In this document: piece after piece, positions 35,948 through 64,000 of the stretch
Numbering within the stretch: the first letter of the stretch is position 1
Layout: each line of letters starts with the position of its first letter
NCBI GenBank assembly: GCA_002104905.1
Contig: MCFE01000470.1
Location: forward strand, 1 to 64,000
DNA length: 64,000 nt
Reading direction: 5' to 3'
Source of the DNA: Basidiobolus meristosporus CBS 931.73
Lineage: Eukaryota; Fungi; Basidiobolomycota
Notes under the pieces: generated by a model
Database searches by the model: none
Told to the model about the DNA's origin: nothing
What the model saw: the letters and a program-made list of their open reading frames with translations, nothing else
Position numbers and translations under genes: made by a program

Positions 35948-36351
35948 GACTTGTTCTGTTGGATGGTGCCACATTGAGCCATGAGTGCCAAATGCTGCCA
36001 GGGTGTGCCAAGAAGGCCAAGTGAGCCTATACTGGCCACAGAGTGTGAAACACAGCTCTGCACATTCATGCAAAGTAGCCCCTGTGTTTCACCCATTGAG
36101 CTGGAGAAAATCTATTTTTTGACCTTTATTTTTGGATCAACAATGTTCAGGATGTGTGAGAACACGGAAGGACTGAAGACATGCATCTGATACTCAGTAC
36201 CCATGGCACTCTGAATCTAGCTCCTGTGGCTTGTATCATGTCACAAAAATGATTGGCACTATCTTGGTCCACTGGTGCTATGAGGCACTGTATTTTAATA
36301 TTAGCCCTAAAGTAAAACCTATATAAAGCACTTATAGTGCCAGATAGTACC
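35948..36351. mobile_element. Second, truncated foldback copy (left arm, spacer, ~20 bp of right arm)
   Basis: Aligns to 32551-32960 including the spacer. Cut off by the copia LTR at ~36354. Confidence 0.85.
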
Positions 36352-41839: not shown

Positions 41840-42910
41840 TGTAGTGGGGTGACAGTGACACCCACCAACAGATGTGCTCATTCCCTTATTTTCTACTTCC
41901 CTATATCCCTACTGCACTCATTTTAGTTTTATCCCATTTGTCTTACCCAATCAGTACTATCCCATAAGCCGGTTGACTATCACACCTGCTTACCTTATTG
42001 CATAAGTTACCCCTCACTTTATGTAAGATTACTAGCTATAAGTACTTCTATATTAGGCAAGTACCCGTGCCAGTACCTGTGACACATGACCAACCCGTGT
42101 CACCTTCCCTACCATTTCCATACCATATATGGTATCCCCATGTTACACAGGTTTCAGAATACTGATTCCTGATTGGTTGGATGTGCTGTGCCTCTTAGAA
42201 CCTTCTGGCACCTACTTAGAACATTCTTAGGTCATTCTGATGTCATTAAGATTTCTATTGATATCCGGAACCTTCTGGAACACCATGATTAGTAATCACT
42301 TAGCCGGTAAGAAAAGTATATAAGGGAGGCTATCCCTCAACAATAAATCATCATCCCTTTTATCAATATACCAACTTGTTGATTAGTGTGATCACTGCTA
42401 CCTGCTGCTACCTGAACTTCCAACCCTAGACCACAGGACACTCCCAGGAAACCGCGCTGACAGCCAATTGACCTTGCAGGCACTACTTGTGAGGAATACT
42501 CAGAGTAGGTATCTTTTATTATATTTGATTCTTTCCCAAGTTTGTTCTTGTACAGGCAAAGATACTTTTCTGTCTTTGTAACTATTGACCACAGCTGCAT
42601 TCTTATCAAGTCCCTGCTGGTGGAATTTACAGTTGTTTTGACTTTGGAAGCTTTAGTACATTGTCATCTCAAAGGACGCTGAACCCAGCACATACTTTTG
42701 TTAAGACGCCAACTTAGTTGGGGATTGTAGCTCAATAGTTTTCCCTTGACAAGCTTGTGGCTTTATTCCCCTTCACATTAGATTAGAAACAGAACCCAAG
42801 TATTCCTAGCAAGCTTTTGCCAGAGGTTATTGCACCCAGTGAACACCCCACACACCAAACACTTCAGAAGTGTTGGACGTATCTCTCCCTTGGACCTATA
42901 CACCACCACA
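41840..42910. mobile_element. Solo LTR, family B (1071 bp, opposite orientation), inserted in copia gag
   Basis: Reverse complement of 17659-18729. TSD ACGT/ACAT. Confidence 0.92.
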
Positions 42911-43889
42911 ACATTCCACACCTGGTAGTTAGATCCATCCAACTTTTCAGTAGAGGAAAAAGTTCCAGTAATAGCAGTACTAGACATTGCCAAGAGTGAC
43001 AGAGTGGGGCCCATAACCTTGTGTAAGAGTCTTGAAGATATTGGAAGTGATTGGGAGAACAAGTATATTATGTTGTTTTCACTTAATGATTTATTGAATG
43101 TAAAAGTAGTATTTATACTTTTACCTAATCTTGGCATTACAAACATGTAGAATAGGTAAAGGAAGGTTGCAAGAACATGTGTGCAAAGTTTGGGGCTGTT
43201 TGGGCAACTTTGAGAATTTTCATGTTCTGGGTACCTGGTGTATTGGTGAAAATATTCAAAGTAAATCCTAACAAGGAATTTGGTCAGTATTCTCTAGCAT
43301 TTGAAGGTAATGATCTAAGTGACTAAGTTAGGTGAATATTTAGGTGAAAATACAAAGCTTTACAACAATACAGAGGCATGATTCTAGAGTGGAATGCATG
43401 AATGGCATAAGGGGAGGTAGAAAAATGATATACCATATGGTGAATTGGTATGGTAGCATTATAGAGGACTAGATATATGCCACTGTACTGCCATGATAAT
43501 ACCTACAGAGGTCCACCTCAAGACTGTTGGAATATGTTAAATTTTCTGCCATATATGGCAATTGCCCATATTGGCTGGTTTGATTGACTTGAATAATTGT
43601 AGACTGCTTTAAGACTGTCTGAGTACCATGTAGGCCCTGCAATAACACCATAAGAACATTGTCAAGTTTATTACTTTATTTGACAGTATAAACAGCAAAA
43701 CACTGGCACCATCCTGCCATTTGATTATCCACAGGGTCAAGAATTCCATGCTGCTGGCATTAAAATGGCTTCATTGCAGGATTCTGATGGCCAATTCAGA
43801 TTGGATCAACCTGCATGACCAAACTGATTTTAAAAGGGCAATAGAAATGCAGTTAAGGGCACATTCTTCTGTCTGCTGGTACCTTAGGA

Positions 43890-44425: not shown

Positions 44426-47100
44426 AAAACTGCTAAGTACTATTTACCATATAGGCAATTTAGATAGTGATGGGATGTTAAGAGCTCACCATTGGCTATT
44501 TGAGGGGCACAAGAATTTCAAGCTTCCCATATCATAATAGTCCTGTGTGATATTGGTTGGATCCACTTGTATGATCAAATTGCTCCTCATAGGGAAGATT
44601 CAGTTCTAGCATGTAAATCATGGTACACTGGGCATTTTAGGCACTACTTTGGGACATTGGTTGTAACTCACTTGAGTATGTGAGCCTTTGGCAAGTGTTG
44701 GTATGCATAGATATTGTCCAAAGTATATCCAAAACTACTAAGAGCAAAGTAGCATGCTCATTATAGCAAGAAGGCTTTACATCACTCAAGTTTTTTAACT
44801 TATGTCAATATTGGAATAACTTTGGAGCAAATGCTCTATGGCTGATTTATGAGATTGTCTATAAATCAAGATCTCCAGCATATTTCACACTTGTTGGTAT
44901 GGGATGGAATTCCTTTCTGTTATCTATACTTTGCCAGCAAATCAAATTTTCTCCCATTTCATTGGTGAGCAAGAAGAAAAAAATGTGGCCAGCAGGCACT
45001 CTGGCTGGCCACTGGTGTATTATTGACAGCACAAAATTAACCTGTCAGTGTGGATAGGCTCCTACTTATTGAAGTTAACAAGTAACTGATATATTTTTAC
45101 ACCATTCTTCATGAAAAATCTCATAGTTGGGATTCATTGGATTTTTAGCTAGTACTCAGCTGGTATTTCTGCTTCAAATTTGCAGTTGCCATTTTTTGTG
45201 AAAGTACCAAGCAGCTGATTACCAAACTTGGCATGAATGCTAGTTGGCCTAGTCACCTCCTGGACAGGAAGTCTGCTTGTCTGCTGTGAAGTCAGTCCTG
45301 AGATATCAACAATGGTTGCTTTTGAGACAGATGGAATTTAGCTGGTGTTATGATAATATTCAGCTGGCCTGTTCTTAATTTGCTTCTTAGGGATTCTGGT
45401 CAAGCTCTATCAACCACACATCAAGTAAAGTCCCAGAAGCATGTTTGCAAAACTGTGGGGACTTTTGGATAGCTCCAGGATCTTTTAAGCTCTGGGAACT
45501 TGATATTTTGGTGAATACTCCTAGTAAATCATGACAAAGATCTTTTGTAGTATTCTCAAGGGTGTGTATGCCAAAGTTTATGTAATTTAGCTAATAAATC
45601 AATGGAGGCAATTAAAAGATTTATAACCATCTTAACTTCCAGGCTTGGCGATTGTATCCATCTGGCATTGCCGCATACTGGAAAAATTCTGCCTGTGGCA
45701 ATTGTAGAAATTGCAGGGAGCAGTGGTTTGGGCTACACAGCATGTTGCGAGTCATAGCACAAATCAACACTAATGGAAGAACAAGAGTGGTAAGCGATTT
45801 TCACTGAGCAATTTATTGGGCTTAAAGTGGTGTGGAAAGTTTTGCCTAATCTTGGCAAAGTAAACACATAGCTTATGCTTGAAATGACTTCAGGAGCATT
45901 TGTGGGTGCTTTTGGACAACTCTGTAACTCCCATACTCTGGGAACTTGACATTGCGGTGAGAACAAGATAAGTGAACCCCAACAAGGAGCTTGGACTGTT
46001 GCAATATTCTGAGGAGTATTGGAAGTGATATGGAGAGCTAGAGGATTTACATGTTATTCACTGTTTTGACAGGTTGATCGAAGATATTTTCAGTGAGCAT
46101 ATTGCAGTCACTGAAGACCACAAGGTACTTGGAGTGGCCAAACCCCACATGTCTCATGAGTTCAAGCTGCGCATGCTTGGTGAAGTCCGTGTCCAGGTTG
46201 GGATAGATCTTTTTCAGGATCTATGCGACCAGATATTTGCTTCCTAACTTATCTACCATATCAACAGAGCATATTGCCATCGGAAAGACCATTAGGTTTG
46301 GCTCGGACGAATATCTGGTCAGGTGCTTCGTAAATTTTCGATTTCCACCCGAGTATTTCCATCTACTCCCACCGATCGAGGTTTTGGTTGGCATCTCTAG
46401 AAAATCCACCCCCCCCCCTCTCTCTTAGCAGTCCCCAATCCAGTGGGTAGGCGGTTCATCACATTGGCTCGTCGGGTGGTGTGTGCATTGGGCATCTCTA
46501 GTTCGCAACCGTGCGAAGATTTTGCTCGTCAACCAGGCAGGTTCTTGGTTCCGGAGGGTGATTCTTGGGGACGGTTACGCCTCCACCCCGTCTACATATC
46601 AACGGTATCGTGGCACTCTCAACCATTGCAAATGGCGGCGGGATGAGAGCGTGCTTGGCTTATGAGGAAGTTTGCTGAGTGACTGGGTATCCAATATGGT
46701 AGTTCACTATGATAAGGTAGCGGATTTCAATTTTCCAAGGGTGATAAGGTTTATTCAAGCGCCTGGAAGTGATTCGGAACAAAAGGGGGGCAGATCTTCA
46801 CCGGTCTGCTATTGGGGTGGAGTAGAAGTGGTCCCACACCCGTAGAACCGATATCACAGCAAAAAAAGGGGGGTGGCATCATATATGAACAGCGGGATCC
46901 GTAGCAACCGTATTGGTATTCGCCGGTTGGGTTGATTGAGAAAATAAGAAGCGCCGATCGAAGGAACCTAAGCCCATGGCCCAGTCTCAACAAGACCCTC
47001 CCAACACTATAACCTAACCAACGGGCTCTATGTGTAGGTGGCAGGCTATTCCGAGGTGGAGGTGGAATCTTTTGGGCGACAAGGGAAGGGACCTACCCTC

Positions 47101-48037
47101 CTACAGGGTGACACCCCAGTAGAGCCCCACCACCACTCCGAGCGTCAATAACCAACGTGCACCCTGGGCGTTCACGTGGCCAGCGGAGCGAAGGATCGCG
47201 CAACGGGGATCCAGCGTGGTGGAGTCCACGGTCGACGCGGTGAAAGTCACCTTGGCATCGGAGCAGTACCCCTGACACTGATGGAACCGAGCGCTGGTGC
47301 ATTTGGACTCCGCCCTGTACAGGGTGTCATTGAGGGAGCCTCGGTCCTCCTTACCCCTGATCTCCACCCACATGGAAAGTCGGAGACCGGAGCAGTCGAG
47401 GGAGAGGGAGTAGTTGTCGGGGATGTCTGCCCTCGGGTCCAACACCTGCTCCCTAAGCGCTCGGGTCATGCCGTTGTAGAGGGAAACGATGTCTTCGGTA
47501 CCCTGCCAGTTCATATGGCTACCCCCGAAGGAGCAGTAGTTCGACCTGGTAGATTGGAGGGGACCCGTCACACCGGGCGTTGGGGAGAGACCGGGATCCG
47601 ATGCACCGATTGGATAGGTGGTGGTGGTGGTGGCAGGGGTCAAGGCGCTTGACGACTGCATGCTATACCAGCTGCAATATTTCGTGATCTGGGCAGGTGC
47701 GTAGGATTTGTCAGAGTCGGGACATCTGGCGACACACTGGTTCATCTCGGATTGGAACTTGGTGAAGGAGGGATTCGACGGATCGCACAATATGGGACCG
47801 AGCTTTTCCGGGGGGAATTCAGGGCCGGATCGGTATGGATGGGCCTGTCGTAGTAGTCGCTCGGCAATATCCTAGCAATCCGGGTCAGTACTCTGCTCAA
47901 GCATACCCCCGCCAATCTCTTACCTCAGCGCAATCCTCCACGCACTCTCCTAGGTCGTTGTCGAAGGGGAAGCCCATTCCCTGCGCAGTCAGGGTCGAAA
48001 GAGTCAACAAACTCGCCAGTATGACGGGGTAACGCAT
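47101..48037 (-). CDS. Predicted secreted, GPI-anchored Cys-rich protein (~294 aa, 2 exons)
   Basis: Exon 1 at 48037-47924 (MRYPVILASLLTLSTLTAQG signal-like). GTAAG...CTGAC...CTAG intron. Exon 2 at 47871-47101, in frame with the 229-aa ORF. Ser/Thr linker between Cys-rich regions and a hydrophobic C-terminus (ARWLLTLGVVVGLYWGVTL). Confidence 0.75.
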
Positions 48038-48527
48038 TGCTTGGTGGTGTGGTTATTTGCGTCCAACCTAAGATCCATCCAGATATATACTCCAAGTCTG
48101 TAGATTGCATCCGGAATCGGTTAGATTTAGGAGCCATGGTCGGCACACCCATCCACCCAAACGCCCAGCCAATACTCCCGAATTCGGGGTTGGTTCTGCT
48201 TCATTCGATCGGTGATATGGAGTTTATTGATGTGGGTAGAATCATTTGGAAATCGAGGTCTCACCCCAAATCTTTGTGATTCGTCCCAAGCTGGCATTGT
48301 GGTTCACTCCAGTGATGGTCGGTGTGATCTACCCTCCACGTGAATCACCGCGCACCAACTACACCAAGTCTCCCCAGCGAGCACTCGAGTTGAACACCAG
48401 GGGGTGGTCATGTGATGGAGGAAAAGGTTTATTCCGCCGGAAGAAGGATGCGGGGGGAAGGGGGAAGGGGGGATGAAAATTATGTTACAAACGAGGGAGA
48501 AGTGGACCCGAAGGGTGTGTGCAGGGC

Positions 48528-49920
48528 CTATTTCTTTCGCTGGTTCAGAGATCGAGACTGGGCTTGGGACTGGGACTGGGACTGAGATTGGGATAGGGAA
48601 GGTAGCGGAGGCGAGGTCCTCAGTTTGTTGATGATTGCTGGGACTTTGTCTTCCTTGAAGTCGCTCCAGAATTCGTAGAGGGTGATCAACTCCTGGGTGA
48701 TCTCCACGATCTAGGACGTATGAACGAATGATTAGGTTTTCCAGGAAACACGCCAAGCTGTTGACGAACTTACCTGCTCGATTTCCACCTGTAGGTCCGC
48801 GAACCATTGTCGCATATCCCTCTTCTCCACATGCTCGGGGTACAGGGAGCACATTAAGTAGATGGCGGCCAGGGCGATCATGTGCGGCGGGTACAACAAG
48901 CACAGATTAGTGCGATAGCTGTCGTTGACGATAAACCTTGGAAACAAAACCCCAGTCGATTAGAAAGGACGTTGAGGTTCGGATCAGAGTGGCAGTAGAA
49001 ATGCTTACCACGCGGTCTGCAGACAGGACCTTCCCAGCTTCAAGTCAGCCATATATCTAGGGTAAGATAGAGATGAACGAATCAGCGATGATCCCAGATA
49101 TACACACGTTTGCCCCGAGGTCACTTACATGGAGAGTGACCGGTATGGGTGGAAGATGATCAGATGGAACTGGAGATCTTCCAGCAGGTAAAACTCGCAC
49201 TCGGCCAGAACATGATGATCGTAAGGAAAAGGGATGGCCTCCCTGGGCTCTAGAGTATCGGGCCAAGAGTTACCATCTGAGGGGGAGAGCTCAGGTTACC
49301 TCGCGGCAATAGCAAACACTTACCCAGCAGCATGTTTTTGGTCTCGTGAACAATGGTCCGAATGTGATGGGGAGATTCCTCAATCTTACACGCCAGATAC
49401 ATACACGTCGATGCCACCAGGTACGGATCGATCACACGAAAACTATTTCTAAACAAAGTGTAACACCCAAGTAAGCAACCGAGGGCCAGTACCAAAGCGA
49501 CCTTGTTCGAGTGAGAAAGTCCCCTTACTTGGCGTAGAACCGTTTGAAATACACCAAGGCGGTGGCGGTGACCTGTTGACGTAATTGCAGCCTTTTACCT
49601 AGCTTGTGCATCACTGTCGAAGTCGCATTAGACTCTATAGAGAAAGGGCTGGGCCAGCGCCAAACCTCGTCCACGCACGGGCCCCGCCTAACCAAGTGGA
49701 AACGAAGACTCACGGTTCGCGAAATAGATCTCTATCCGGAAAATATCCGCCGCCTCGGCGTACTGCAGGTCCTCCAGCTTGTTTTTCTGCAGGGAAGTGC
49801 GATCTAACTTCCAGTATTTACTAGGAACGCGTCGAGAAGATACGATTAGAGCCTGGTTCGCAACAAAGCATGAGTTGAAGAGGAATACAATTGTGAGGAA
49901 TCCCAGTAGTTCGCCGCCAT
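48528..49920 (-). CDS. SSN8: Cyclin C (Mediator CDK8-module cyclin), 8 exons
   Basis: Spliced translation MAANYWDSSQFKYWKLDR...LRQQVTATALVYFKRFYAK...IDPYLVASTCMYLACKIEE...ECEFYLLEDL...FHPYRSL...AWFIVNDSYRTNLCLLYPPHMIALAA...RQWFADLQVE matches cyclin C motifs. All introns are GT-AG. Confidence 0.95.
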
Positions 49921-50306
49921 CGTTGTCTGGCTTGTAGTTGAGCGTGGAAAGGGTTAGGGGCGTTAAGTTGGTTGATGTGGGACAATCCCCAAGAACAATG
50001 TGATTCGCATGGAGCTTGCTCACTGGAACGGAATTGATCGCAGTTAGGGTTGGGTTGCTAAGCAAAATGATTAAATTCCGGCCAGATTTGATGATTATTC
50101 GGTGCAGATGAGAGTAGATCTACGAGCCAGCAAAAACTGGCAAAAACTGGCAAAAACGGGCGACAACGCGCAAAAACCAGGGGTCATCACCAAAAAAGGC
50201 GAAGTAAAAAAAAGAAAAATACCCTGGACTGGGATGGAAGTGGATCTAACAAAAGGGGTGGGCGAGGACTGGTGGATCCTTCTCCTTTGCAACCATCGAG
50301 ATTAAG

Positions 50307-50691
50307 ATGTCTGCCGAACAAGCTATTGTCTACGCTGCCCTCATCCTCCAAGACGACGGTGTTGAGATCACCGTAAGTTCTTGATTCACCACCATGCTGC
50401 ATCGGTGTTCCCCGTTTACTGACTGTCTCCCTTTAGGCTGATAAACTCACCGCCCTCACCAAGGCTGCCAACGTCGAAGTCGAGCCCGTCTGGGCCTCTC
50501 TCTTCGCCAAGGCTTTGGCCGGCAAGAACCTCGGTGACTTGTTGATGAACGTTGGTTCCGCTGGTGCCGCTCCCGCCGCTGCTGGTGGTGCTGCTGCCGC
50601 CGGTGCTGCTGAAGATGCTCCTGCTGCTGAGGAGAAGGAAGAAGCCAAGGAAGAGTCTGATGACGATATGGGCTTCGGTCTCTTCGATTAA
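50307..50691 (+). CDS. RPP1: 60S acidic ribosomal protein P1 (2 exons: 50307-50372, 50437-50691)
   Basis: [22 protein letters not shown]|[27 protein letters not shown]...[20 protein letters not shown], with the canonical C-terminus. Confidence 0.97.
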
Positions 50692-51055
50692 GCAGATGGT
50701 TGTATTCATCCCGATCTCTTAACCAACAAACCAACAATAAATATTGCCTTTGTGCTATTCACGCGTCTCGCAATCGCCCTTTGTTGCTCATTTTCCTCGT
50801 TCCTCAATGGATGGGTGGAGTCGGAAAAGATTCAGGCTGCAACACCAATGCCAACTCCATTACACCTCGCTAGACCAATCCTTCATCGAGATCGAAGTCC
50901 AGAGTAGATCCCGATCTTTTCGGGAAATACGGAAATCGGCTGATCTCGGTTAGTTGAAAGCTAAAATCCCCCCTTTTTAAGTGTCAGCTGGTTACTCTCT
51001 AATACCGGTGGACAGCCGACACGTTGAACAGACCGCCTCCCACTAGACAACGAAC

Positions 51056-51827
51056 ATGTTAGAGAACTGGTCGTACACGGACATCTTTTTCCTACTGGCT
51101 CTTCCTGTTCTGCTTCATTTCACCTTGACGAAGCTGTGGTTTTCCAAATACGCAAAGTCCGGCAAGAAGGTAAGATTCAGTGGGAAAGACCAGGTAGTTG
51201 AGCACGAGGCCGGGGAAGAGAAGGAGGGCGAGACCGCCGAGGAGAACAAGAGCTCGGATGGGAATGAGGCTACCAAGTAAGTGTCCCCCCCGGAACCTCC
51301 CTGTGAACCTTCTTCCCTGACAATTCCAACCGAAAGTGAGAAGAAAAAGCGAGAGTTTCCTCCGTTGAGGCCACCCGAGGATTACCCGTTCACCGCGAAG
51401 GAGCTGGCCAAATTTGACGGCTCCGATCCGGAACTCCCGGTCTATGTAGCCATCAAAGGAGTGGTGTTCGATGTCACTTGGAACAGAACCGCCTACGCAC
51501 CGGGAAGCGGTTACCATGTGTTTGCCGGCAAAGATGCCTCCAAAGTAACCCGCTTCTCCCATTTCCACTGCGGACAAAACGACTCATCCGTATTTCCTAG
51601 GCACTTGGAATGAGCTCACTAAAAGCCGAAGATTGCACTGCAGACTACAGCAGCCTGAATGACAAGCAGGTAAACAACCACCTTTCCTTTTCCTTTTCTT
51701 TGGGTTGAAACCCTCGCTGACCAACCCCTACTCTAACCTAACTGGTAAACAGAGAGAAACCCTAGATGGCTGGTACAAATTTTTCATGAAGCGGTACAGT
51801 ATTGTTGGTCGGGTTACTCAAAACTAG
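51056..51827 (+). CDS. Membrane-associated progesterone receptor (MAPR/Dap1-like) cytochrome b5-type heme/steroid-binding protein, 4 exons
   Basis: Exons 51056-51276, 51337-51544, 51601-51669 and 51753-51827. N-terminal TM helix, then FTAKELAKFDGSD..PVYVAIKGVVFDVT...Y.PG..YHVFAGKDASKALG...LDGWYKFF.KRY.IVGRV. Confidence 0.9.
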
Positions 51828-52619
51828 AGAAATTTCGAATCACGCACTTGTGAAGCGACAATAAAGCACCCTCCTGAATAAAGCGGACTCTTTAAAATGA
51901 CGCAGCGGTTGCATGCCGGACAATGGTCACTTCTTTAACAGAGCGGAGGCATGTTTCGGCCAAACCATAGTCATGCTGCCATATAGTTTGTTGGATACTG
52001 ACCATAGATCAGATTGCTGCTGCTATAGTACGCCCACTACGCAACTAGTTGTCAATATTTAGCAATTTGTTTAAAATAGCAAACCAATTCGGCATGTACA
52101 CATCCAATAAAAAACGGATATTTTGGATGGAATTTTTAGGGTGTGAATTGTCATCAGGGCTAGGGTTTAGGCGGGATTTTCTTGGTCATATCACTGTGAC
52201 ATTGCCTTACCAGGGATGATTTTTTTAGAGATCGGCTGATGTTTTTTCTGTTGATTTTTTTGGTGAGTGACAGTTACGGTGAAATCCAGGGAACCAATGC
52301 TATTGGCCACCTCCCTGTTGAAGAATTGTTAATCCTTCTGATTTAGGTTGGCGATCCCACTAATTCACCCATCTATGCTTGGATATTAATGGTGCCAGGT
52401 TCGCGAATATTGACATAGGTATGCGCAATACTGGCAAATTCATCTAGAGTTTAAAGAGGGACTTTTACTACAAATATCCCTGGAGCAGTCTTAAAGGCCA
52501 GTAATGTAGATAATTTAATGGAAATCAGATCAATTAGCGGATTCCTTGACAATCTATTCCAAAAGCGGGTTCAACCAATCAACAAAAGTCCAGCACTCGA
52601 TTTTGTACAAGGGTGGTCA

Positions 52620-53401
52620 AGACCCTACGCATAGAATCAACAACATTGTGGTGGATATTGGTTGCCATCAATCATGCAACTGGCTGGCCAATTGTACGAG
52701 CAGCAATGAATCCAGAGTACCAAGAGATACGGCAAAATCACTCTTATGGGGCATCAGAAATAAAAATGACATGCGTAAACGTACCGAACGAGAATTGGAG
52801 AAATTAAGACACCACCGCCAAGTAGCGGAAGAAGCTCAGAAGCAGGTAGCAATGAAAATGCAACTACACTGAAACCAAGCAGTAAAAGAACGGAAGGATG
52901 AGCTGAAGAAAGGAGACCAGGCATGAATCCGGAATCAAGCGCGAATGAAATTTATGTCAGTTTGACTGGGTCCCTTCAAGATTACTCGAAAGATGCAGCT
53001 TGGAACATGTCAGCTAAAGGAACAGAATGGTCAAAATTTATAGGAATTATATCACGGCAATTGCCTTACAAAGGCATCATACGACATACCAAGCCGAAGA
53101 AGAGCGAATCCAGGAGAATCCTCAAACTTAAGAAGGGAAGAATGTCAAAGACAATACGAATCAAAGGCAACAAGTGAAATATGCACTGATTATAAGAAGG
53201 ATGATCCGAAACAACACTATATAAGCATCTGGATAAGGGTCCAGTATTACACAGATATAACACTACCACAGCTCTGGAGCAGAACAGAATCGTATCACTT
53301 TAGTAAAATAAAGTGTGTCTATTAAACATGTCGAAATTATAAATGGACGCTGGAATTCAAGACAGGCTTCTTTTGGATACTTGATGGATCAGATTCCATA
53401 A
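52620..53401 (+). pseudogene. Relic of an older Ty3/gypsy: integrase fragments, PPT and probable 3' LTR
   Basis: WILVAINHATGWPIVRAA aligns with [44 protein letters not shown] aligns with [40 protein letters not shown] aligns with [18 protein letters not shown] of the adjacent intact element. Purine tract AAGAAGGGAAGAA (53130-53142) is followed by TG. Confidence 0.8.
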
Positions 53402-53760
53402 TTTTCTGTTATGATTTAAATCCTAACTAGTCACTACCGATCACTTGAACACTACTGATCGAACACCTGGAATTCCACACAGACGATCAATCGCACTCAG
53501 TGATACACACGTTATTTAATACATCTTGAACCCTCCTTTTGGAAGCTTGCCCTACGTTATCGGAAGCTCTCCCTCCGAGGCTATCTCTATATAAACTCCT
53601 TTGAACACTATCAATAAAGCATCAACCTTTTACCGGTTCATCAACTATTCAGATAACCTCTCTGATTCGTATTGGACATCCTCCGGTCCTCCTCCGCTTG
53701 CCCTCGATTCATAACATTGGTAGCAGCGAACCTCCGATCTCCAAAAAACAAAAACCTCCG

Positions 53761-53940
53761 TACCTCCCAGAAACTTTTCCAATCTCTCAGAAACTCTTCC
53801 GATCTCCCAGAAACTTTTCCAATCTCTCAGAAACTCTTCCGATCTCCCAGAAACTTTTCCAATCTCTCAGAAACTCTTCCGATCTCCCAGAAACTCTTCC
53901 GATCTCCCAGAAACTCTTCCGATCTCCCAGATATTCTTCC
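53761..53940 (+). repeat. 20-bp tandem repeat x9 in the retrotransposon 5' leader
   Basis: Unit ~GATCTCCCAGAAACTCTTCC. A 40-bp A/B alternation x3 is followed by monomers, with degenerate units on both sides. Confidence 0.95.
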
Positions 53941-54113
53941 AATTGTCCAGAGATACCCTCCGTACCTGCCCGAGACCCTCCCAACCTCCCAGAGAAACCC
54001 TCCGTTTCACTCAAAAAAAGAAAAAAAACAGTACCCAGTCAATTCTGCCAGAGAACCAGCCCCCTTGGTAAACACACCCGCCTACCGCAAATCAAACAAT
54101 ACCCAAAAACAAA

Positions 54114-57100
54114 ATGAGTGAAGAAAAGCCAAAATTTAGCTCTTCAGAAGAAATGTTGGCCTATATTGAGAGTCTTGAACAACAAGTTGCTGAGTTAGCC
54201 GGTCAAGGACAGTCCCACACAACTGAGCCTGCGGCCCTCCCTAGTCTGGACCCAAGAATGGGTAGGCAGACAGACTTGGACTCTTTACATTTTGTGAACA
54301 CCCAGAGATCATGGTTTACTGGTCAAGGTATACAGAGAGAGGGTGAAGCCTCATCTGTAAGACCTGCGGTGCCTCCCAATTCCTTGAATCTTGGAGAAGA
54401 TGGGCAAGGCTCTCTGGACTTCACAAAACAATATAGAGCAACAAATCTGAAACTTCAGAAACCCAACATCTTTGAAGGCAAAAGACACACTGCCACTCTA
54501 GAGACTTGGATATTTGAAGTAGAGCAGTACCTATACTTCTCAGATGACTCTGAAGAAGTCAAAGTACATTATGCCTGTTCACTTTTCAGAAAGGAAGCAA
54601 CCATGTGGTGGAAACTTCACATTCAAGGAATGAATAGGGGCATCTTTCCACCCATAGCCTCCTGGGCTGACTTTGTTAAAGCATTGAGAAAGAGGTTTAC
54701 ACCTATCAATGCTGATAGAATGGCAAGAGAAAAACTGTCCAAACTCTTTCAAGCCAAGTCTGTTCAAGAGTACAATGAGCAGTTTAACTTGCTTAGTATG
54801 GAAATTCAAAACATGCCTGATACTGAACTACTTGAGCAATACCTAAGAGGCCTGAAATCCAACACTAGATGGGAAATTGAATACAAAGACCCCAAAACCC
54901 TAGTAGAGGCTATGGAACTGGCAGAAAGATATGATGCCATACACTTCAGAAGGGCTGTCAACCACAGAATTGGTCACTCAAGAACTACTACAGGCCTCAA
55001 AGCCAATAACCACATACCTATTGGTAGTCAACCAATCACTGAACAAGGTGCACACTACCCCCACACACTGGAGCCTATGGACCTAGATGTTATGCAGAGC
55101 ACACCAAGACCTTCTAAAGAGGAATGCTTCAAGCTTGGACTATGCTTTTACTGCAAGGAACAGGGTCATAAAGTCAATGAATGCCCAAAGAGGCCATTAC
55201 AAAGAGTATTCCAACTCTCCACTAAGGAGGAGGAGCACACAATCAGCCTTGTTAAGGAGTATCAGAGGACTCAGAGCTTATATACTACCCCAAAGATGCT
55301 GAAACTCCCAGGGATTCTCAACAACAACCAATGTGTCTCTGTACTCATTGACAGTGGAGCAACTGATGTCTACATTTCAAAAGATGTAGCTGATCAGATG
55401 AAGCTACAAACAATCCCTTGCCCCCCAATTCACATCCTCTGTGCCACCAAGGAATCAATTATAGTGAACAGCAGGACTGAACCCTTGACTTTACAAATCA
55501 GGGACTTCCAAGACACCATTTCCCCAATTATCATACCCCAAGCCAACTTTGAAATCAATGTGGGACAAACTTGGCTAAGAAAGCACAATCCTGACATAAA
55601 CTGGCAGACTCAGGAAGTTGTAATCAACAAGGATGATGCAAAATATCATCTGTCACCCAAACCAACCCTGGACAAAGGCAATGCACCAGAACACACCATA
55701 TCAAAGAAACAGTTTGCCCACTCTATCAGACAGAATCCCAAACTGTTGCACATGATAGCCTTTGCCAAAATCCAAGAGACCACAGAAGTGACAAATGACA
55801 GGCTCAAGACCTTGTTAGCAGAGTTTCAAGAGGTTTTTCCCAAGGAAATCCCTGCACTACCCCCAAGCAGAGAGATTGACCATGCCATAGAAGTAACAGA
55901 TGATAAACCAAGAAACAGAGCCCCATATAAGTTCTCCCCAAAGGAAATGGAGACTTTGAAGGAAACATTGAAGGACTACCTGGCTAAAGGCTGGATAAAA
56001 CCCAGTAAATCACCATGGGGAGCTCCAGTACTCTTTGCTCCAAAGAAGGATGGGAAGCTACGGTTCTGTGTGGACTACAGGGCCCTAAATGCAATCACTG
56101 TCAGAAATTCCTACCCATTACCAAGAATTGATGCCCTCTTTGACCAACTGGGGAAGGCAAAGATATTCTCTAAAATAGACCTGGCATCTGGATATCACCA
56201 AATCAGAATTAAGCCTGAAGACACCTCTAAGACAGCATTCAACACAAGATATGGTCATTATGAGTTTGTTGTGATGAGCTTTGGCCTGACTAATGCCCCA
56301 GCAACATTTCAGACACTCATGAATAGCATCCTGGAACCATATTTAGAGAAATTTGTCCTGGTCTACTTAGATGACATTCTGATCTATAGTACCAGCATGG
56401 ATGACCACATGAAGCACTTGAAGACAGTACTGGCTATACTAAAAAAGCACAAGCTATATGCACAACTTCCTAAGTGTGAATTCCTCACCAGATCAGTTGA
56501 ATACCTTGGTCACATAATCTCAGATAAAGGACTACACATGGATCCAGCCAAGATAGATGCTATCCAGAAATGGGAAGCCCCAAAGTCACTCACTGAAATG
56601 AGATCCTTCCTGGGACTTGCATCATATTACAGAAGATTCATCAGGGACTTTGCAACTATTGCAGCCCCCCTTACAGACTTGACCAAAAAAGAGAAAGACT
56701 ATATATGGACCCCAAACTGTGAGACAGCTTTCCTAACTCTGAAAGAAAAGCTATGCCAAACCCCTGTGCTTCAGTTGCCTGATTTCTCAGAACCTTTCTG
56801 TGTATACACTGATGCTTCAGATCTAGCTGTTGGAGGGGTACTGACTCAAAAAGAACACCCGGTTGCTTATGAGTCCAAAAAGCTATCAGTAACTGAACAA
56901 AACTACCCAGTCCATGAAAAAGAACTCTATGCCATACTACATTGTCTGAGAGTGTGGAGATGCTACTTGGAGGGCAAACACTTTGTGGTATATACAGATC
57001 ATGCATCCCTAAGATACATTCACACCCAGAAGCTATTATCCAGAAGAATAACTAGATGGATTGAAGAACTACAACAATTTGATTTTAAAATCCACTACCT

Positions 57101-58463
57101 CCCTGGGCCAAAGAATACAGTTGCTGATGCACTCTCAAGGCAACATATATCAATGGTAGATCATGAGTTGGACTGGCCAGAATACATGCCAGAGTACTTG
57201 GCAAGTCAGACAATGCCAGAAGATTTATCACAGGAAGTAAGGGTCAAGATTAAGAAAGAAGCAGAGAATTTCTCATATGGTGAAGACGAGGTACTTTACA
57301 GACACATGGAAGAAATAGGGCCTGTACCATATATTCCATTTGTATACAGAGGTGACATGATAATCAAGAATCATAAAGCCTTTGGACATCTGGGCATCCA
57401 AGGAACTTATGAAATAACTAAAAGGAGAGCCTGGTGGCCTAAACTCAAACAATTTATAGCTGAGACCCTCAAGACCTGCCCTGAGTGCCAGCTGGCTAGA
57501 CCATACAACAAGGAACATGCCCCATTAGAACCACTGACTCCAGTTCCAGCATTCTACAGATGGGGAATTGACTTCATTGGAATATTGCCTGAAACTTCAA
57601 GAGGGAACAAGTGGATCATAACTGCAATTGACCATACCACTAAGTGGTGTATAGCAAAAGCCATGCCAGCAGCTACTGCAAAAAATGTTGCAAAATTCCT
57701 TTACCTGGAAATCTTTATGCAGTTTGGATGCCCAGGTGAAATTCTGTCTGACAGAGGAGCAAACTTTTTGGAACAAACCTTGAAAGAATACCTTCAGATA
57801 ATGGGGGTTAGACATTTGAAGACATCAGCATACCACCCTAGAACAAATGGGGTCACAGAGAGGTTCAATGGACTCTTTGGGAAGATGCTGACTACTTATG
57901 TCAAAGGAGCCAAACATAAGTGGGATGAATTTGTACATCAAGCACTCTTTGCCTGTCGTATTAGAGTCCATTCAGCAACACAAAAGTCCCCCTTCTACCT
58001 AGTGTATGGTACACATCCAAGAATCCCAGGTGATACCTTACCACCATACATCTGGGACTTAAAGAACCAAAAAGACTTGGCAGAATTCAGAACAAGGGAA
58101 CTGGAAGAATTAGGACATGCAAGACATGATGCCATCAAGAATTTAAAACGACAAGCAGAGAAGATGAAAGAACAGTACAACAAAACAGTGGTAACAAAAC
58201 CCTTAACTTTGGGAAAACTTGTATTAGTCCGAAATGAAAGTAGGCTAAAACTAGAACCACATTGGGTTGGACCCTTTATTATCACAAGAGAAATGCCCTT
58301 CAATACATTTCAACTCGCAGACATGTCAGGTAAAGTAAAGGAGGACCTAGTGCATAGAGACCGACTAAAGGAAGCACAGCTAAAAAACCCAATGACACCA
58401 CCAACCAAATACTGGTATTACAAGTCCGATAGACAGGACTCTTCAGGAGAAGAACCTCTTTAA
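54114..58463 (+). CDS. Single-ORF Gag-Pol polyprotein (1449 aa)
   Basis: Gag, [14 protein letters not shown] knuckle, protease LIDSGAT, RT YLDD, RNase H YTDAS...DALSR, integrase H-H-CC plus D,D,E and GPF motif. Gypsy domain order, and no chromodomain after GPF. Confidence 0.98.
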
Positions 58464-58794
58464 GTGTGGGAGTATGTTATGATTTAAATCCTAACTAGTC
58501 ACTACCGATCACTTGAACACTACTGATCGAACACCTGGAATTCCACACAGACGATCAATCGCACTCAGTGATACACACGTTATTTAATACATCTTGAACC
58601 CTCCTTTTGGAAGCTTGCCCTACGTTATCGGAAGCTCTCCCTCCGAGGCTATCTCTATATAAACTCCTTTGAACACTATCAATAAAGCATCAACCTTTTA
58701 CCGGTTCATCAACTATTCAGATAACCTCTCTGATTCGTATTGGACATCCTCCGGTCCTCCTCCGCTTGCCCTCGATTCATAACATTTCCAGGTT

Positions 58795-58866
58795 GGCTCA
58801 ATGGTCTAGTAGTATGATTCCTCGTTCGGGTCGAGGAGGTCCCGGGTTCAATTCCCGGTTGAGCCC
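58795..58866 (+). tRNA. tRNA-Pro, anticodon CGG, intronless
   Basis: Acceptor stem GGCTCAA/TTGAGCC, anticodon stem CCTCG/CGAGG with loop TTCGGGT, T-arm CCGGG-TTCAATT-CCCGG, A-box TGGTCTAGTAG, downstream TTTT terminator at ~58874. Confidence 0.95.
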
Positions 58867-59976
58867 GGTTCACTTTTGCCACTGTTTCATGGAAAGCATC
58901 TCCAGCCAGCGCATTGAAACGAATCCCACGGATGGTCCACTTTCTGGAACACGTGGTGGGTGGAGATTCCAGGTGCCGAGTAGTTGTTGAACAGATTCAT
59001 TCTGGAGGAGAGTTTCCGCAGTGTCGAGTGCCTTCGCTTCCCTCTACCATGGTAGGGATCCTTCGGGGAATGGTTGGACTCCCATATGTACCTGGATGTC
59101 CGTACTTCGACGGGCTCCCGTTTCGAGAAAAAGATCCTCCCCCGTAGCTCCGCAATTTCATCTAAGGCTGGATGACTGGCACCTTCTCAGAAGCCAATCT
59201 CTCATTCAATATATGTATAAACACGCTCTAGGCAGTCATTCCGTTGACTACAGATTACAGATTGAAGAATAGAGGTGAAGCCACATACTTGGTGGGTTTA
59301 AGACTTTCATCTTCGGCAATAACTCGGTAGTTTTACCAAACGGCACATTGGTGATCAGGAGACTGACTACGCCGATGGTTTTTTTTGTGGGTGGGGGTTG
59401 TCGTATGTGAGATTTGCCCTTACCACTCGTGTCTACCCAACACTTCATAGCTCAACCCAAGTCACTCTGAACCTGGCTAAGGGCCAGAGCGTCTTGGTTG
59501 AGGAGATGACTCTATGGCCTATAACTGATCGTGCTTTTCTAAACCGCGACAAATAAACCAGAATATCTTTTGACTTGGTCATTCCCCGCCACAATGCAAT
59601 GCCTCAGATTAAGCAATCAATTTTAGTTTACACGGGCTGTAGCGCATTTTGTGTGATTCCCTGGAGGGAATGCATAATTGCGACTGACCAAAAATAGATC
59701 GTGTCCCTAATTTAGGTGCAATAGTGGACGCAACGGCACAAATAAGGCTGGATCGGTGTCGGCAACCAGTTCCAACCTTGAACACTTGGGTCAAATCAAC
59801 GAGTGACAACACAAGCATGAGATCGGACGCGCCAGGAAGAACCTTCGATGAATTAGCGCATCACCATATGGAGGTAGATTGTACTGAACCTTCGATATTA
59901 TTAATGGTTCACCGGCTCTATAAAAGATTCCTTGCTGCACCCACCTAGTATCATTACCACTACCACTACCATTACC

Positions 59977-60657
59977 ATGAATTCTGAATTACGCGCCAAA
60001 GCCTTCCTTTTCGACCTGGACGGCACGCTAGTCAATACAATCGCCGCTGCAGAGAGGCAGTACACCATCTGGGCCACTAAACTCGGGATCGACCCCAAGC
60101 CGGTGGTTGAATACTGCCACGGGGTCAGAGCAATCGAGGTGATGCAAAAGTTCGCACCCAAGGGGGCGAAGATCACCATTGACGATGCCAACGAGTGGGA
60201 AACTGGGTTCAGCAATGATTCGGAAGGGGTCTTCGTACTCCCAGGCATACCAGAGCTCCTGAAGAAGCTTCCCAAACACCGCTGGGCTATTGTTACTTCG
60301 GGCGTCCGTGCCATGGCTGAAGCAAGACTACGGCAAATGGATCTTCCTGTCCCTGACGTATTCATCACAGCAGACACCGTAACCCGTGGAAAACCTCACC
60401 CCGAAGGATACTTGGCTGCCGCATCCAAGCTTGGTTTCAGGCCCGACGAATGCATCATCTTCGAGGATGCACCGGCCGGAATCGAGGCAGGAGTTAGCGC
60501 CGGGATTCGCACTATCGGTATCACCACTAGCTACAAGCCAGAAACCCTCCACAAAGCGAATGTTCTCATCGATGATTATCATGACATTCTGGTGGAAAAG
60601 TCGGCCAACGAGGAGGAGTTTGAAATCAAGGTGCTAAGAAACAGAAGATCGGATTAA
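59977..60657 (+). CDS. HAD-superfamily sugar/glycerol-phosphate phosphatase (YfbT/Gpp1/Dog1-like), intronless, 226 aa
   Basis: Motif I FDLDGTLV, motif II WAIVTSG, motif III GKPHPEGY, motif IV FEDAPAG. ATG at 59977 in ACCATG context. Confidence 0.93.
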   Translation: MNSELRAKAFLFDLDGTLVNTIAAAERQYTIWATKLGIDPKPVVEYCHGVRAIEVMQKFAPKGAKITIDDANEWETGFSNDSEGVFVLPGIPELLKKLPKHRWAIVTSGVRAMAEARLRQMDLPVPDVFITADTVTRGKPHPEGYLAAASKLGFRPDECIIFEDAPAGIEAGVSAGIRTIGITTSYKPETLHKANVLIDDYHDILVEKSANEEEFEIKVLRNRRSD

Positions 60658-60697
60658 ATCGCAAACCGCAAACCGCAAACCACAAACCACAAATCAC
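60656..60697 (+). repeat. 7-bp microsatellite (CAAACC[G/A]) just after the HAD stop
   Basis: AAATCGCAAACCGCAAACCGCAAACCACAAACCACAAATCAC. Confidence 0.8.
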
Positions 60698-61820
60698 TAA
60701 TGGTACATCGTGCATCGCAAATCCCCAAGTAAATAGAGTCATATGGCGGCTTCCTACTGGCCGGAATCAATTTTGTGGCCAGATCAAGATTCATTGATCC
60801 ATGCTGGAAACCAAATTAAAGGACAAGGCATTGCTTGTGCTGATTAGTATTTATCATCGGAATATTGTTCCTAGCCACTCTGGCGGACTCCAGGGTAAGC
60901 GATTCCACTGACTGAAACTAGGCAGGCGATAATCGATTTTGATGGGTGTAAAGGCTTGCAAATGGCTCTCTCTTCCACGGAGTATCTATCTTGCGACTCC
61001 GAAGCAAAGAGCCTCGAAAACATGGAAGAAGGACTCGAGGCTGCTGCCCACAATCCGGCAAGAATCGCTCGGTAATTTTATCGAAAGAGTAGAGTTACCA
61101 CAAGGAATCTAAGGGCTCAGGATGCAAGCACGGGTGTGTTGAATAGTGATGAAATGGGTTGTTCACCTGGAATAGAAAGTGCCCCAAGGACAAGCGAAAT
61201 CGTAAAAATCTTGAAGAATTAGTGCAAGCAGTTGCTACCAAAATTCGGACGGACATGGGGGGTTGTTGTTGATACTACGTCACTTGTTCCTCGCCCCAAG
61301 TTACAACGAATAGAACCGCTTGCTGAGAGTCCTTATTTGAGCTACATATATATATACATAAGCATCACGTGCGCAATATGGTTGGTAAGCCAGCTGATAT
61401 GACTGTGTGGCATATGTGTGGAGGTGATGTGATGTGATGGCATGAAGAGTAGGAGTCGGACTGCACCTGGAGGAAAACTCCATCGTTGGCTAATCTAGTG
61501 GTACATCACTCTACTTGTCTGAGCATAGTCACCACCAGATGCGAGTCGAGTTTCCCGTATGGACAGCGGATCGCTGCCCACGTCATTCTAGCTAACTGAG
61601 TCAAATGCGAACTTTAACTGAGGTTAGATACGCAATGTTCTATAGCGGTGATGTCAAAGGGAATAGGTACTGAGCATACAAGGCTGCCTCCGTTCTTTGG
61701 CTGAAACTAAACACGCAACACTCGATTTCCGTGATGTCATAGGAAATATCGAACGAGTACATAAACTTGGCACAGATCTCCGGGCACTGCAGAGTATCTA
61801 TCTCATAACTCGGAAACAAC

Positions 61821-62006
61821 ATGGAATACGAAGGAAAGAACCCCGGGAACGTTGAAGGAGGATTCAAAGCAGCCGCGCACAACCCCAACGTCTCAGCCGA
61901 GAAGCAACAAGAGTCGCTAGATAAGGCATCCCAGATCCACGAAGAACGCACTGGCAAACCGCTGAAGGAGCAGACCATTGAAAAGGAATCCAAGGATTCG
62001 AAATAA
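61821..62006 (+). CDS. con-6: Conidiation protein 6 (Con-6)-like, copy 1 (61 aa)
   Basis: KNPGNVEGGFKAAAHNPNVSAEKQ matches the Con-6 motif KNPxNVxGGxKAxxHNPNVSEExK. Confidence 0.9.
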   Translation: MEYEGKNPGNVEGGFKAAAHNPNVSAEKQQESLDKASQIHEERTGKPLKEQTIEKESKDSK

Positions 62007-62715
62007 AGATAAGGCACGCTGCAATATGTGCGCTGATTAGGGAAGAAATACAAAGGGATTCATTCGGATTCTGGAGATCTAGGCGTCCATCGTTTTGCTT
62101 GGTTCCTCGATGATGTAATAAATACAAAAGTACGCACCTTTTTATTAGCACTTTCAAACCTTCTGGTATCATAGCTCTGTGTCCAAGTGAACATCCAAGC
62201 CAAAGCCAGGCATGAGCATCATTCAAATCTAAAGTGTTATCGTGTTGGATTATGAGTATAGGCGATAATTAATGCACTTATACTGTAGAGCGCTTATATC
62301 GAACTTCAATCAGATGCATGATATCGTTGTTAAAGCATACTGCCCACGGAGAAATAAAGAGGAAGAGAGGATGAATAACGCACCAATAGGCCACAGATAT
62401 CAATCGCACTCCAGGCCAGATGCGGCATTCTTATTCATTTTTTCCGATTATTGCACTTGTTGACCTCGATCATACATCGCGTATCGGTCAAATCCGATCA
62501 GACAAACCGTGGCGCAAATGATTTAAGATACCAAAGACTACGCTGATCTGCACTGTGGATATCGATCGAATCAAGCCGATGGCATAATGTCGCTGAATGA
62601 ATCTAGTCATGAAGCACTCATCATTCATGATGTCACCAGAACCGCACGTCGAGTATATAAGTCTACAAAAGGTTTCCTGCTCTACAGAACATCTATCCAG
62701 CAACCCAGAAACACC

Positions 62716-62901
62716 ATGGACTACGAAGGAAAGAACCCCGGAAATGTTGAGGGAGGCTTCAAGGCTGCTGCCCACAATCCCAATGTCTCAGCTGAGAAGC
62801 AACAAGAGTCACTAGAGAAGGCATCGCAAATCCATGAAGAGCGTACCGGCAAACCGCTGAAGGAGCAAACCATTGAAAAAGAATCCAAGGATTCAAAATA
62901 A
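62716..62901 (+). CDS. con-6: Con-6-like, copy 2 (61 aa)
   Basis: Same motif. ACCATG start aligns with the paralogs. TATATAAG about 60 nt upstream. Confidence 0.9.
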   Translation: MDYEGKNPGNVEGGFKAAAHNPNVSAEKQQESLEKASQIHEERTGKPLKEQTIEKESKDSK

Positions 62902-63700
62902 ACCTCAGATACACTACGAAGTGTACATTGAAATCTCAGTTGCCATTTCACTTGTGTCTTGACCAGAGAGACTGGCTTTCGCCCACAAAAGAAATGGGAG
63001 GCTTGAACCAGTAGGGAACAATAGAATGATGAAATCACTTGTCTAGTGCTCAATCAAGCCGAAGTGCCTTCGAGTTCCCAGAACCAATGGAATACGAAAA
63101 TATGAGTAGCTCTCACATATTTGGTTGTGTACTTGGAGTTTAGTGAGGTACAACTACAATGCATTCTGATGCGAATACAGCTGCTCATGGTAACCTTGGA
63201 TGGTGAAGGCCCTGGTGATGCAATTACTAGGCGTTTATATCAGGGAGAATAGGTTGTTGCAGATGGTGATCCACGTAAATTAAGTATGTGAAGCCGAGTG
63301 TGAAGCACCAGCCCAGCCACAATCTTGTATAAGATTAGGGAGTCATCAATAGAGACTCCAACTGATTTGGCATGGTCATCTCGTTGATCGTTACTATGTT
63401 TGACCTTGATCATCAATTGTGTACCTGACATAATCATCTCATCAATCGTGTATTTATTAGTTCTGATCATGACGTTCCTTCGAAACAGTGGGTGATGATG
63501 CAGCTCAGTTATATCCCGCAGTCGTCGTAATCTTTACATTAAGGATCAATCGTTCAAACCGTCGTTGACAAAGATCATACACTGAACCCATGACACTATC
63601 AAGACCAGATTCTGATGCCATAGGGAGTATTGTTCGTGTATAAAAGTCAGTCAAAGATAACATCTACCACATATCATTTCTCTAATAGCTCAAAAACATC

Positions 63701-63886
63701 ATGGAATACGAAGGAAAGAACCCCGGAAATGTTGAAGGAGGATTCAAAGCCGCCGCCCACAATCCCAACGTCTCAGCCGAGAAGCAACAAGAGTCACTAG
63801 AGAAGGCATCCCAGATTCATGAGGAACGTACCGGCAAACCGTTGGAGGGGCAGACCATTGAAAAAGAATCCAAGGATTCAAAATAA
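63701..63886 (+). CDS. con-6: Con-6-like, copy 3 (61 aa)
   Basis: Same motif. TATAAAAG about 60 nt upstream. 3' UTR resembles that of copy 2. Confidence 0.9.
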   Translation: MEYEGKNPGNVEGGFKAAAHNPNVSAEKQQESLEKASQIHEERTGKPLEGQTIEKESKDSK

Positions 63887-64000
63887 AGATCCGATACACT
63901 ACGAAGTGTTCATTGAAAATTCAATTGTCATACTGATGTTAAAGCTCTAGAGGTAGGCCTTTTCCCGCAAAAGAAATGGGAGTCTTGATCGAGTGCGAAC

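Follow-up and report, generated by a model that had tools for sequence, protein, structure and literature searches.

How can a retrotransposon that was inserted very recently carry a gene almost free of CpG between long terminal repeats (LTRs) of normal CpG content? The question is raised by a Ty3/gypsy (Metaviridae) element of Basidiobolus meristosporus CBS 931.73, located at positions 53407-58784 of the 64,000-nucleotide stretch analyzed here (the window; contig MCFE01000470.1, positions 1 to 64,000 of the forward strand). The single gag-pol open reading frame (ORF) of this element, at 54114-58463, contains 12 CpG against 196 expected at 42.6% GC, an observed/expected ratio (O/E) of 0.06, whereas the host flanks show CpG O/E of 0.79 and 0.83. 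The observation is real and very strong. An earlier examination of the letters alone (the sequence-only reading) had counted about 12 CpG in the ORF against about 200 expected at about 43% GC, distributed as 3, 4 and 5 over its beginning, center and end, and about 13 in each 310-bp LTR. All of these counts held when they were repeated. The claim that arginine is almost always encoded by AGA or AGG (AGR) also held, with 70 AGR and 5 CGN codons (7% CGN) in the ORF; in putative host exons CGN accounts for 63%. The sequence-only reading attributed the pattern to a lineage that lost CpG under purifying selection and became nearly immune to CpG methylation and deamination, while its promoter LTRs stayed unmethylated. 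This interpretation is reasonable in outline, and its methylation claims are unproven.

The element is complete and apparently autonomous. It consists of the following parts, listed with the tRNA gene next to it.

53403-53406, + strand: left copy of the target-site duplication, TTTC (TTTC flanks the element on both sides in the window and occurs once at the empty site in contig MCFE01000193.1).
53407-53716, + strand: 5' LTR of 310 bp with TG...CA ends, 100% identical to the 3' LTR; 13 CpG, O/E 1.07.
53717-54113, + strand: untranslated leader of 397 bp; 13 CpG, O/E 0.87.
54114-58463, + strand: single gag-pol ORF of 4,350 bp, 1449 amino acids; 12 CpG, O/E 0.06.
58464-58474, + strand: spacer of 11 bp with a short purine-rich run just 5' of the 3' LTR, a putative polypurine tract as read from the letters.
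58475-58784, + strand: 3' LTR of 310 bp, identical to the 5' LTR; 13 CpG.
58785-58788, + strand: right copy of the target-site duplication, TTTC, identified by comparison with the empty site.
58795-58866, + strand: tRNA-Pro(CGG) gene predicted by ARAGORN; the 3' LTR ends 10 nt upstream of its first base.

The Pfam domains of gag-pol stand in the order typical of Metaviridae: capsid, CCHC knuckle, aspartic protease, reverse transcriptase, RNase H and, last, integrase. Their motifs are all intact, including CCHC, DSGA of the protease, YLDD of the reverse transcriptase, and HHCC plus core of the integrase. The 5' LTR has a TATA-like box near 53588. One nucleotide past this LTR, a stretch that begins with TGG (53718-53729) resembles a primer-binding site, and it is a candidate only since no tRNA was matched to it.

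The first step toward an answer is the age of the insertion. Contig MCFE01000193.1, a public locus (L001) of the same strain, encodes an HAD-phosphatase protein 100% identical to that of the neighboring gene in the window. It aligns with the window at 98.7-99.2% on both flanks of the element, and the element itself is absent. Positions 8786-8800 of this contig (window 53403-58788) read through with a single TTTC, which indicates a 4-bp target duplication. This comparison shows a genuine and very recent insertion, for which haplotypes or assemblies that differ by about 1% in the flanks are polymorphic. Because the LTRs are 100% identical and the site is unoccupied in MCFE01000193.1, the loss of CpG is older than the insertion. 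It is a property of the lineage and not decay in place, which supports the sequence-only reading on this point. All of the sequence features of such a recent and polymorphic insertion are inherited from its source copy.

The second step is the kind of loss. The ORF shows what is expected from deamination of 5-methylcytosine (5mC), namely a CpG deficit with a matching excess of TpG and CpA in all codon phases. The O/E of TpG and CpA is 1.48 and 1.21 in the ORF, compared with 1.07-1.17 in host DNA, and at codon junctions T followed by G and C followed by A occur at 1.62 and 1.33 times expectation. When codon position is controlled, the CpG deficit is present in all three phases, codon boundaries included: O/E is 0.12 at codon positions 1-2, 0.05 at positions 2-3 and 0.04 between position 3 and the next position 1 (4 observed, 90 expected). 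The corresponding values in putative host exons and ORFs are 0.69, 0.80 and 0.86, and host coding sequences are thus not equally depleted. Shuffling of synonymous codons with the ORF's own usage gave 90±6 CpG, with a minimum of 71 in 2000 shuffles, and recoding of the gag-pol protein with host codon usage gave 233±11. Since 12 are observed, the deficit lies at the level of the dinucleotide and is not an effect of codon usage.

Two relatives, the closest for which DNA was fetched, were compared with the element; one is on a metagenome contig of the Joint Genome Institute and the other is from Calcarisporiella thermophila. They share 45-47% protein identity with gag-pol over ungapped alignment columns and have 46-47% GC. 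Their ORFs, of similar GC content, are not depleted (CpG O/E 0.83 and 1.02), so the loss of CpG is specific to the host lineage and not to the protein family. Of the 29 arginines shared by all three proteins, 26 are encoded by AGA or AGG in the Ty3 element, against 20 and 7 in the relatives. The alignment indicates that the protein was retained while its coding changed. The purifying selection proposed from the letters alone is borne out by these arginines and by the presence of all catalytic motifs. Where the Ty3 lineage has lost an arginine, the residue is now K, N, S or I; deamination of a CGN codon would have led to H, Q, C or W.

These data bear on a compositional or RNA-level origin, in which an A-rich codon usage of retroelements, or selection acting on RNA, produced the deficit without any relation to DNA methylation. 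The third positions of the ORF are A-rich (35% A) with a preference for AGA, and the relative L002 also favors AGR at the conserved arginines (20/29). However, shuffles with the ORF's own usage expect 90±6 CpG instead of 12, the relatives of similar GC are undepleted, the CpG-rich leader belongs to the same RNA, and non-coding DNA of the transposon cluster in the window is equally depleted. Codon usage as the cause is largely refuted by the undepleted relatives and the synonymous shuffles, and this origin as a whole is very improbable.

The third step concerns the other transposons. The left part of the window is occupied by one large feature.

1-45648, no strand assigned: cluster of decayed copia and gypsy elements; CpG O/E 0.07, with a sharp border to CpG-normal DNA near 45649.

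The copia and gypsy ORFs that are still open in this cluster have CpG O/E of 0.02-0.04. The context of the CpG is important here. In the cluster, TCG/CGA has an O/E of 0.014 against 0.124 for other CpGs, a 9-fold stronger depletion (P 1e-20), and host DNA shows no loss of TCG/CGA (O/E 0.91-0.96). CCG/CGG had been considered as the spared context, but this holds only in part, and the data are described more clearly by an early loss of TCG/CGA ahead of the other contexts. Loss of TCG/CGA ahead of other contexts in repeats is the pattern of the TpCpG-directed hypermutation, similar to repeat-induced point mutation (RIP), that has been described for repeats in Pucciniomycotina (PMC3318451).

The sequence-only reading held that CpG decay destroyed the neighbors of the element. 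Two copia copies at 24217-28770 and 36347-43367, which belong to one family and are 85% identical, have 20 TG/CA-discordant sites against 0-6 for other double-transition pairs. At the cluster edge, 2 TG/CA-discordant dinucleotides (44696 and 44932) separate the two assemblies in the 1.4 kb that they share. Some CpG decay in place has thus occurred within the cluster. However, only about 44 of the differences at the 636 differing sites of the copia copies fall at CpG-related sites, of which there are 24. The copia LTRs (about 220 bp) contain no CpG and no TG/CA-discordant site, so they were already CpG-free on arrival, unlike those of the Ty3 element. Most of the CpG poverty of the cluster was inherited. 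The neighbors were not mainly destroyed by CpG decay, and the sequence-only reading overstates its share in their damage.

The two assemblies can be compared in the cluster over 44579-46000 (L001 1-1420). Over this edge they differ by 3.3%, with a rise toward the left end to about 5.6%, whereas the difference at non-CpG host sites is 0.5%. The CpG-free state is the same at the cluster edge in MCFE01000193.1, treated as an independent public assembly of the PacBio era, and is thus not an assembly artefact. These results also bear on RIP of the Neurospora type, or base-calling errors at methylated sites, as the source of the pattern. A repeat-restricted C-to-T process operates in many fungi, and Dim2/RID-related enzymes are listed for B. 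meristosporus. However, TpA shows no excess (O/E 0.71-0.83), neither the ORF nor the LTRs are damaged, base-calling errors would not yield AGR codons at conserved arginines, and the CpG-free transposon DNA is found in both assemblies. For the Ty3 element, Neurospora-type RIP is refuted by its intact ORF and LTRs together with the lack of a TpA excess, and we give this explanation, artefact included, practically no weight.

In the host regions 45649-53406 and 58785-64000, 19 transitions at CpG sites were observed against about 7 expected, about 2.5 times after correction for ascertainment. This suggests mild CpG hypermutability outside transposons too.

CpG is retained in the host genes, as the flanks show, and in a transposon remnant just upstream of the element.

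52711-53076, + strand: C-terminal coding relic of another Ty3-like element, which is older and of a different kind; 34% identity to amino acids 1302-1421 of gag-pol by tblastn; CpG O/E 0.80.

The sequence-only reading had described this remnant as an older integrase relic with its CpG kept. The retention of CpG was confirmed, but the protein identity is only 34%, and the relic belongs to a different family from the Ty3 element and is not its ancestor. At the DNA level the two show no similarity. The relic and its probable LTR (52711-53406) are stacked at the same tRNA-upstream site in both assemblies, with CpG O/E of 0.72-0.80.

The fourth step is to ask which part of the element requires explanation. 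Depletion of the ORF is general among the transposons of the window, and this partly fulfills one of the conditions that the sequence-only reading had itself named as refuting. The distinctive part of the Ty3 element is therefore its CpG-normal LTR and leader, and not its CpG-poor gene. In LTR plus leader, 16 of the 26 CpGs lie in TCG/CGA, the most mutable context (TCG/CGA O/E 1.23). Because O/E is about 1 here even with so many TCG/CGA sites, about 700 bp passed along the line of descent without raised CpG mutation. These 700 bp contain 7 CCGAT and 9 GATC motifs, and GATC reaches 12.7 per kb compared with 2.3 per kb in the ORF. Much of the leader (53724-53971) is made up of about twelve 20-bp tandem units, in which CCGAT and CCAAT variants, a single CpG-to-CpA step apart, alternate. 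A GATC or AATC site occurs once in every unit.

The residual CpGs of the ORF are at its positions 87, 119 and 254 (three in the first 260 bp), at 1948, 2747, 3174 and 3844 (four in the center), and at 4036, 4117, 4203, 4249 and 4314 (five in the last 320 bp). Their clustering toward the ORF ends is significant under three null models (P ~0.001). The changes at the borders are steep, with O/E falling from 0.87 to 0.14 at the ATG and rising from 0.29 to 1.07 at the stop codon, in each case within about 100 bp. The last CpG of the leader is at 54086 and the ATG is at 54114. Even so, depletion remains strong over the last 435 bp of the ORF (O/E 0.29). In addition, the residual CpGs differ in type along the ORF. 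The first 3150 bp contain no TCG/CGA where 71 are expected, and the five CpGs in this part are all of the spared type (not TCG/CGA), each followed by G. All seven CpGs in the last 1200 bp are TCG/CGA (Fisher P 0.0013 against the five upstream), and several of them are CCGA, resembling CCGAT(C), which is found repeatedly in LTR and leader. Near the 3' end there are still three CGA codons, each of which a single change would turn into a stop codon. The sequence-only reading saw in these counts a gradient of protection spreading from the LTRs. The clustering is real, but a simple leakage of LTR protection does not agree with the cliff at the start codon and with the 3' CpGs being all TCG/CGA. The split of residual CpG types along the ORF is poorly explained by either of the two main readings, regional exposure or a coding-specific purge.

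The 3' end is also informative on APOBEC-like editing of minus-strand cDNA. This was rejected, since it predicts G-to-A changes, seen as a CpA excess, that rise toward the 3' polypurine tract; the TpG excess dominates, and the 3' end is the least depleted.

The first of the two readings, to which we give an even chance of being correct, is that host CpG-directed methylation or mutation hit the interior of the element, that selection kept the protein, and that the LTR and leader escaped. The genome would direct against its transposons, but not its genes, a methylation or mutation of cytosine that is specific to CpG and strongest at TCG. Along the line of descent, this pressure on the interior would turn synonymous and codon-junction CpGs into TpG and CpA by transition; essential arginines would end on AGA/AGG, and purifying selection would retain the protein. 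The LTR and the leader of about 400 bp would have been unexposed in those copies that transposed onward and would hence keep a neutral CpG level. The parts that escaped may correspond to a promoter-proximal zone and to edges abutting open chromatin associated with RNA polymerase III (Pol III). That the LTRs stay unmethylated is an inference from the sequence, as are methylation as the agent, the interior as its target and the cause of the escape; the CpG pattern, its origin before the insertion, its restriction to the host lineage and the conservation of the protein are shown. As a by-product, the ORF would offer almost no targets for CpG-directed methylation or deamination; the near-immunity proposed from the letters alone agrees with the 12 CpGs that are left.

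Several results are in favor of such regional exposure. Transposon DNA in the window is depleted (O/E 0.07) and genes are not (about 0.8), with a sharp border in both assemblies. The CpGs at codon positions 1-2, those of arginine codons, are the least depleted (0.12 against 0.04-0.05), as they should be where the loss is due to mutation and is opposed by selection. The losses through transitions and the clustering of the residual CpGs at the ORF ends also agree with this reading. If edges are shielded in open chromatin alone, the copia LTRs, which lie in the cluster, should be free of CpG, as they are. For B. meristosporus, DNMT1 (ORX99839), UHRF1 (ORX90637), two Dim2-like methyltransferases and HELLS are listed, and DNMT3 and DNMT5 were not detected (PMC10538959 supplement). 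The least-methylated copies have been implicated in new insertions in other fungi, according to work cited in PMC11258239. As for the escape, clusters of adenine methylation lie near transcription starts in early-diverging fungi (PMC13297926) and have a negative relation to 5mC (PMC11258239). Such clusters are a possible reason for a protected promoter-proximal zone.

Other points weigh against regional exposure. The 5' cliff in CpG matches the start codon, whereas neither the end of the LTR nor the predicted transcription start coincides with it; a cause specific to coding sequence would account better for this position. All seven CpGs that remain in the final 1.2 kb belong to the type that was removed first in the cluster, and none to the spared type. 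Since host gene bodies are undepleted, any body methylation must be transposon-specific. CpG is retained (O/E 0.80) in the relic, which is dead, derives from a related family and occupies the same site. The 5mC status of B. meristosporus is left blank in a survey table (PMC10538959 supplement), and our literature search did not yield a 5mC map of Basidiobolus. Transposons of Phycomyces blakesleeanus carry 5mC over their whole length with a peak at their ends (PMC11258239), the opposite of protected LTRs. Finally, a single copy of the Ty3 family was examined. An exact-protein look-up found no further copy, a full-length word search with gag-pol gave no match above 54% identity, and a search with the gag-protease piece gave a sole match at 24% identity. 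No further copies or solo LTRs of the family were found in the window or in the fetched public locus.

The second reading is an adaptive purge confined to the coding sequence, in which copies with a low-CpG ORF outlast CpG-directed hypermutation or silencing by the host. Selection would act on gag-pol only, and the non-coding parts would never have been selected. We consider this a serious alternative, although a less probable one than regional exposure. Both CpG transitions match the ORF borders within about 100 bp, and at equal distance from the element edge the leader has an O/E of 0.87 compared with 0.14-0.29 in coding sequence. The shift of conserved arginines to AGR with the residue retained agrees with it, as do the lost arginines that became K, N, S or I rather than H, Q, C or W. 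The residual CpGs lie in the least conserved parts of the polyprotein, its termini. A comparable avoidance of TpCpG target sites has been proposed for Microbotryum transposons, which have few TpCpG at non-synonymous positions, in the account of Horns et al. 2012 (PMC3318451, citing Hood et al. 2005). On the other hand, hypermutation of the whole element would also have depleted LTR and leader through harmless inherited changes, and O/E there is about 1, with 1.23 for TCG/CGA. Because of this, an adaptive purge still needs regional protection of LTR and leader. The three CGA codons one step from stop persist near the 3' end, and the CpGs at codon positions 1-2, the most dangerous ones, are the least depleted. 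The copia family, CpG-free in its LTRs too, fits plain mutation pressure.

The difference in kind between the residual CpGs of the last 1.2 kb and those upstream could also come from a mosaic history, in which LTR, leader and 3' pol were recently gained by recombination or transfer from a CpG-retaining lineage and joined to an old CpG-poor core. The CpG-normal Ty3-like coding relic at the same site indicates that CpG-normal tRNA-targeting lineages exist in the genome. However, relic and element lack DNA similarity, the last 435 bp of the ORF are strongly depleted, and no donor was identified. We regard such a history as unlikely.

Regional exposure and adaptive purge both start from a host process directed against CpG in transposons. 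In a bolder reading, Basidiobolus would have a TCG-preferring, transposon-directed cytosine hypermutation or methylation defense, met by CpG-free recoding of the enzyme genes in several transposon classes with CpG-normal control regions and, in the Ty3 element, by shielding of LTR and leader. The result would be a heritable 'silencing-proof' design and not a passive mutational scar. This reading is doubtful, less probable than either of the two main ones. If it is true, the defense is of a kind so far described only in Pucciniomycotina, and a tRNA-targeting Ty3 lineage parks its LTRs in Pol III-associated open chromatin. The evenly spaced GATC/ApT sites of the leader could in that case seed adenine-methylation clusters that exclude 5mC.

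The architecture has parallels in several systems. Vertebrate retroelements (LINE-1, endogenous retroviruses and lentiviruses), whose hosts methylate CpG, have CpG-poor ORFs, arginines encoded by AGA/AGG and a CpG-rich promoter in the 5' untranslated region or LTR. As in these elements, a CpG-normal promoter region stands beside a CpG-suppressed coding body, and the loss is carried by the active lineage. However, the host in our case is an early-diverging fungus whose genes are not CpG-depleted, the suppression is more extreme (O/E 0.06), and fungi are not known to have an RNA-level CpG sensor such as ZAP. Since the same architecture is familiar from vertebrate retroelements, it is not a new principle. 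Our literature search found no report of a CpG-purged ORF with a CpG-normal LTR in the phylum of the host, Zoopagomycota.

The second parallel is with fungal repeats. As in Pucciniomycotina and Microbotryum, the CpG loss in Basidiobolus is restricted to transposons and prefers TCG, and target sites have been shed from coding positions. It differs in the phylum, in the purging of all CpG types and codon phases instead of only non-synonymous TCG, and in the untouched LTR and leader. In the rust fungus Austropuccinia psidii, young transposon insertions are CpG-rich and lose CpG with age (PMC12774611). Genes are spared there as in Basidiobolus, and transposon-specific CpG methylation is taken as the cause of the depletion (PMC12774611), whereas the brand-new Basidiobolus insertion is already CpG-poor in its ORF. 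Phycomyces resembles Basidiobolus as an early-diverging fungus with DNMT1. Its 5mC in CG context is confined to repeats, with LTR elements the most methylated, and transposon expression is anticorrelated with it (PMC11258239). However, its 5mC peaks at element ends, and the sequence footprint in Basidiobolus implies that the ends escaped.

The importance of this case is that the insertion is recent enough for an unoccupied site to exist in a public assembly, and yet its gene lacks about 95% of the CpGs of host-like coding. Lineage loss can thus be separated from decay in place, which studies of CpG depletion in fungal transposons usually cannot do. B. meristosporus is culturable and has long-read data, DNMT1 and UHRF1. 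It can be used to ask how methylation targets the interior of transposons and whether transposons evolve resistance.

The third parallel is with Ty3 of Saccharomyces cerevisiae. Both are Metaviridae elements inserted a few bases upstream of a tRNA gene. Ty3 has a 5-bp target duplication and produces gag-pol by frameshift, whereas the Basidiobolus element has a 4-bp duplication and one continuous gag-pol ORF. Budding yeast is without cytosine methylation (PMC13297926), so Ty3 has no reason to lose CpG. The single Basidiobolus copy, 10 nt upstream of tRNA-Pro with the older Ty3-like relic stacked at the same site, would fit a Pol III start-site habit, and insertion at tRNA gene starts is our favored description of the element.

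To the right of the HAD-phosphatase gene, the window ends with a tandem array of small genes with the Con-6 domain (61600-64000; L001 11829-17654), the repeats of which are 80-92% identical.

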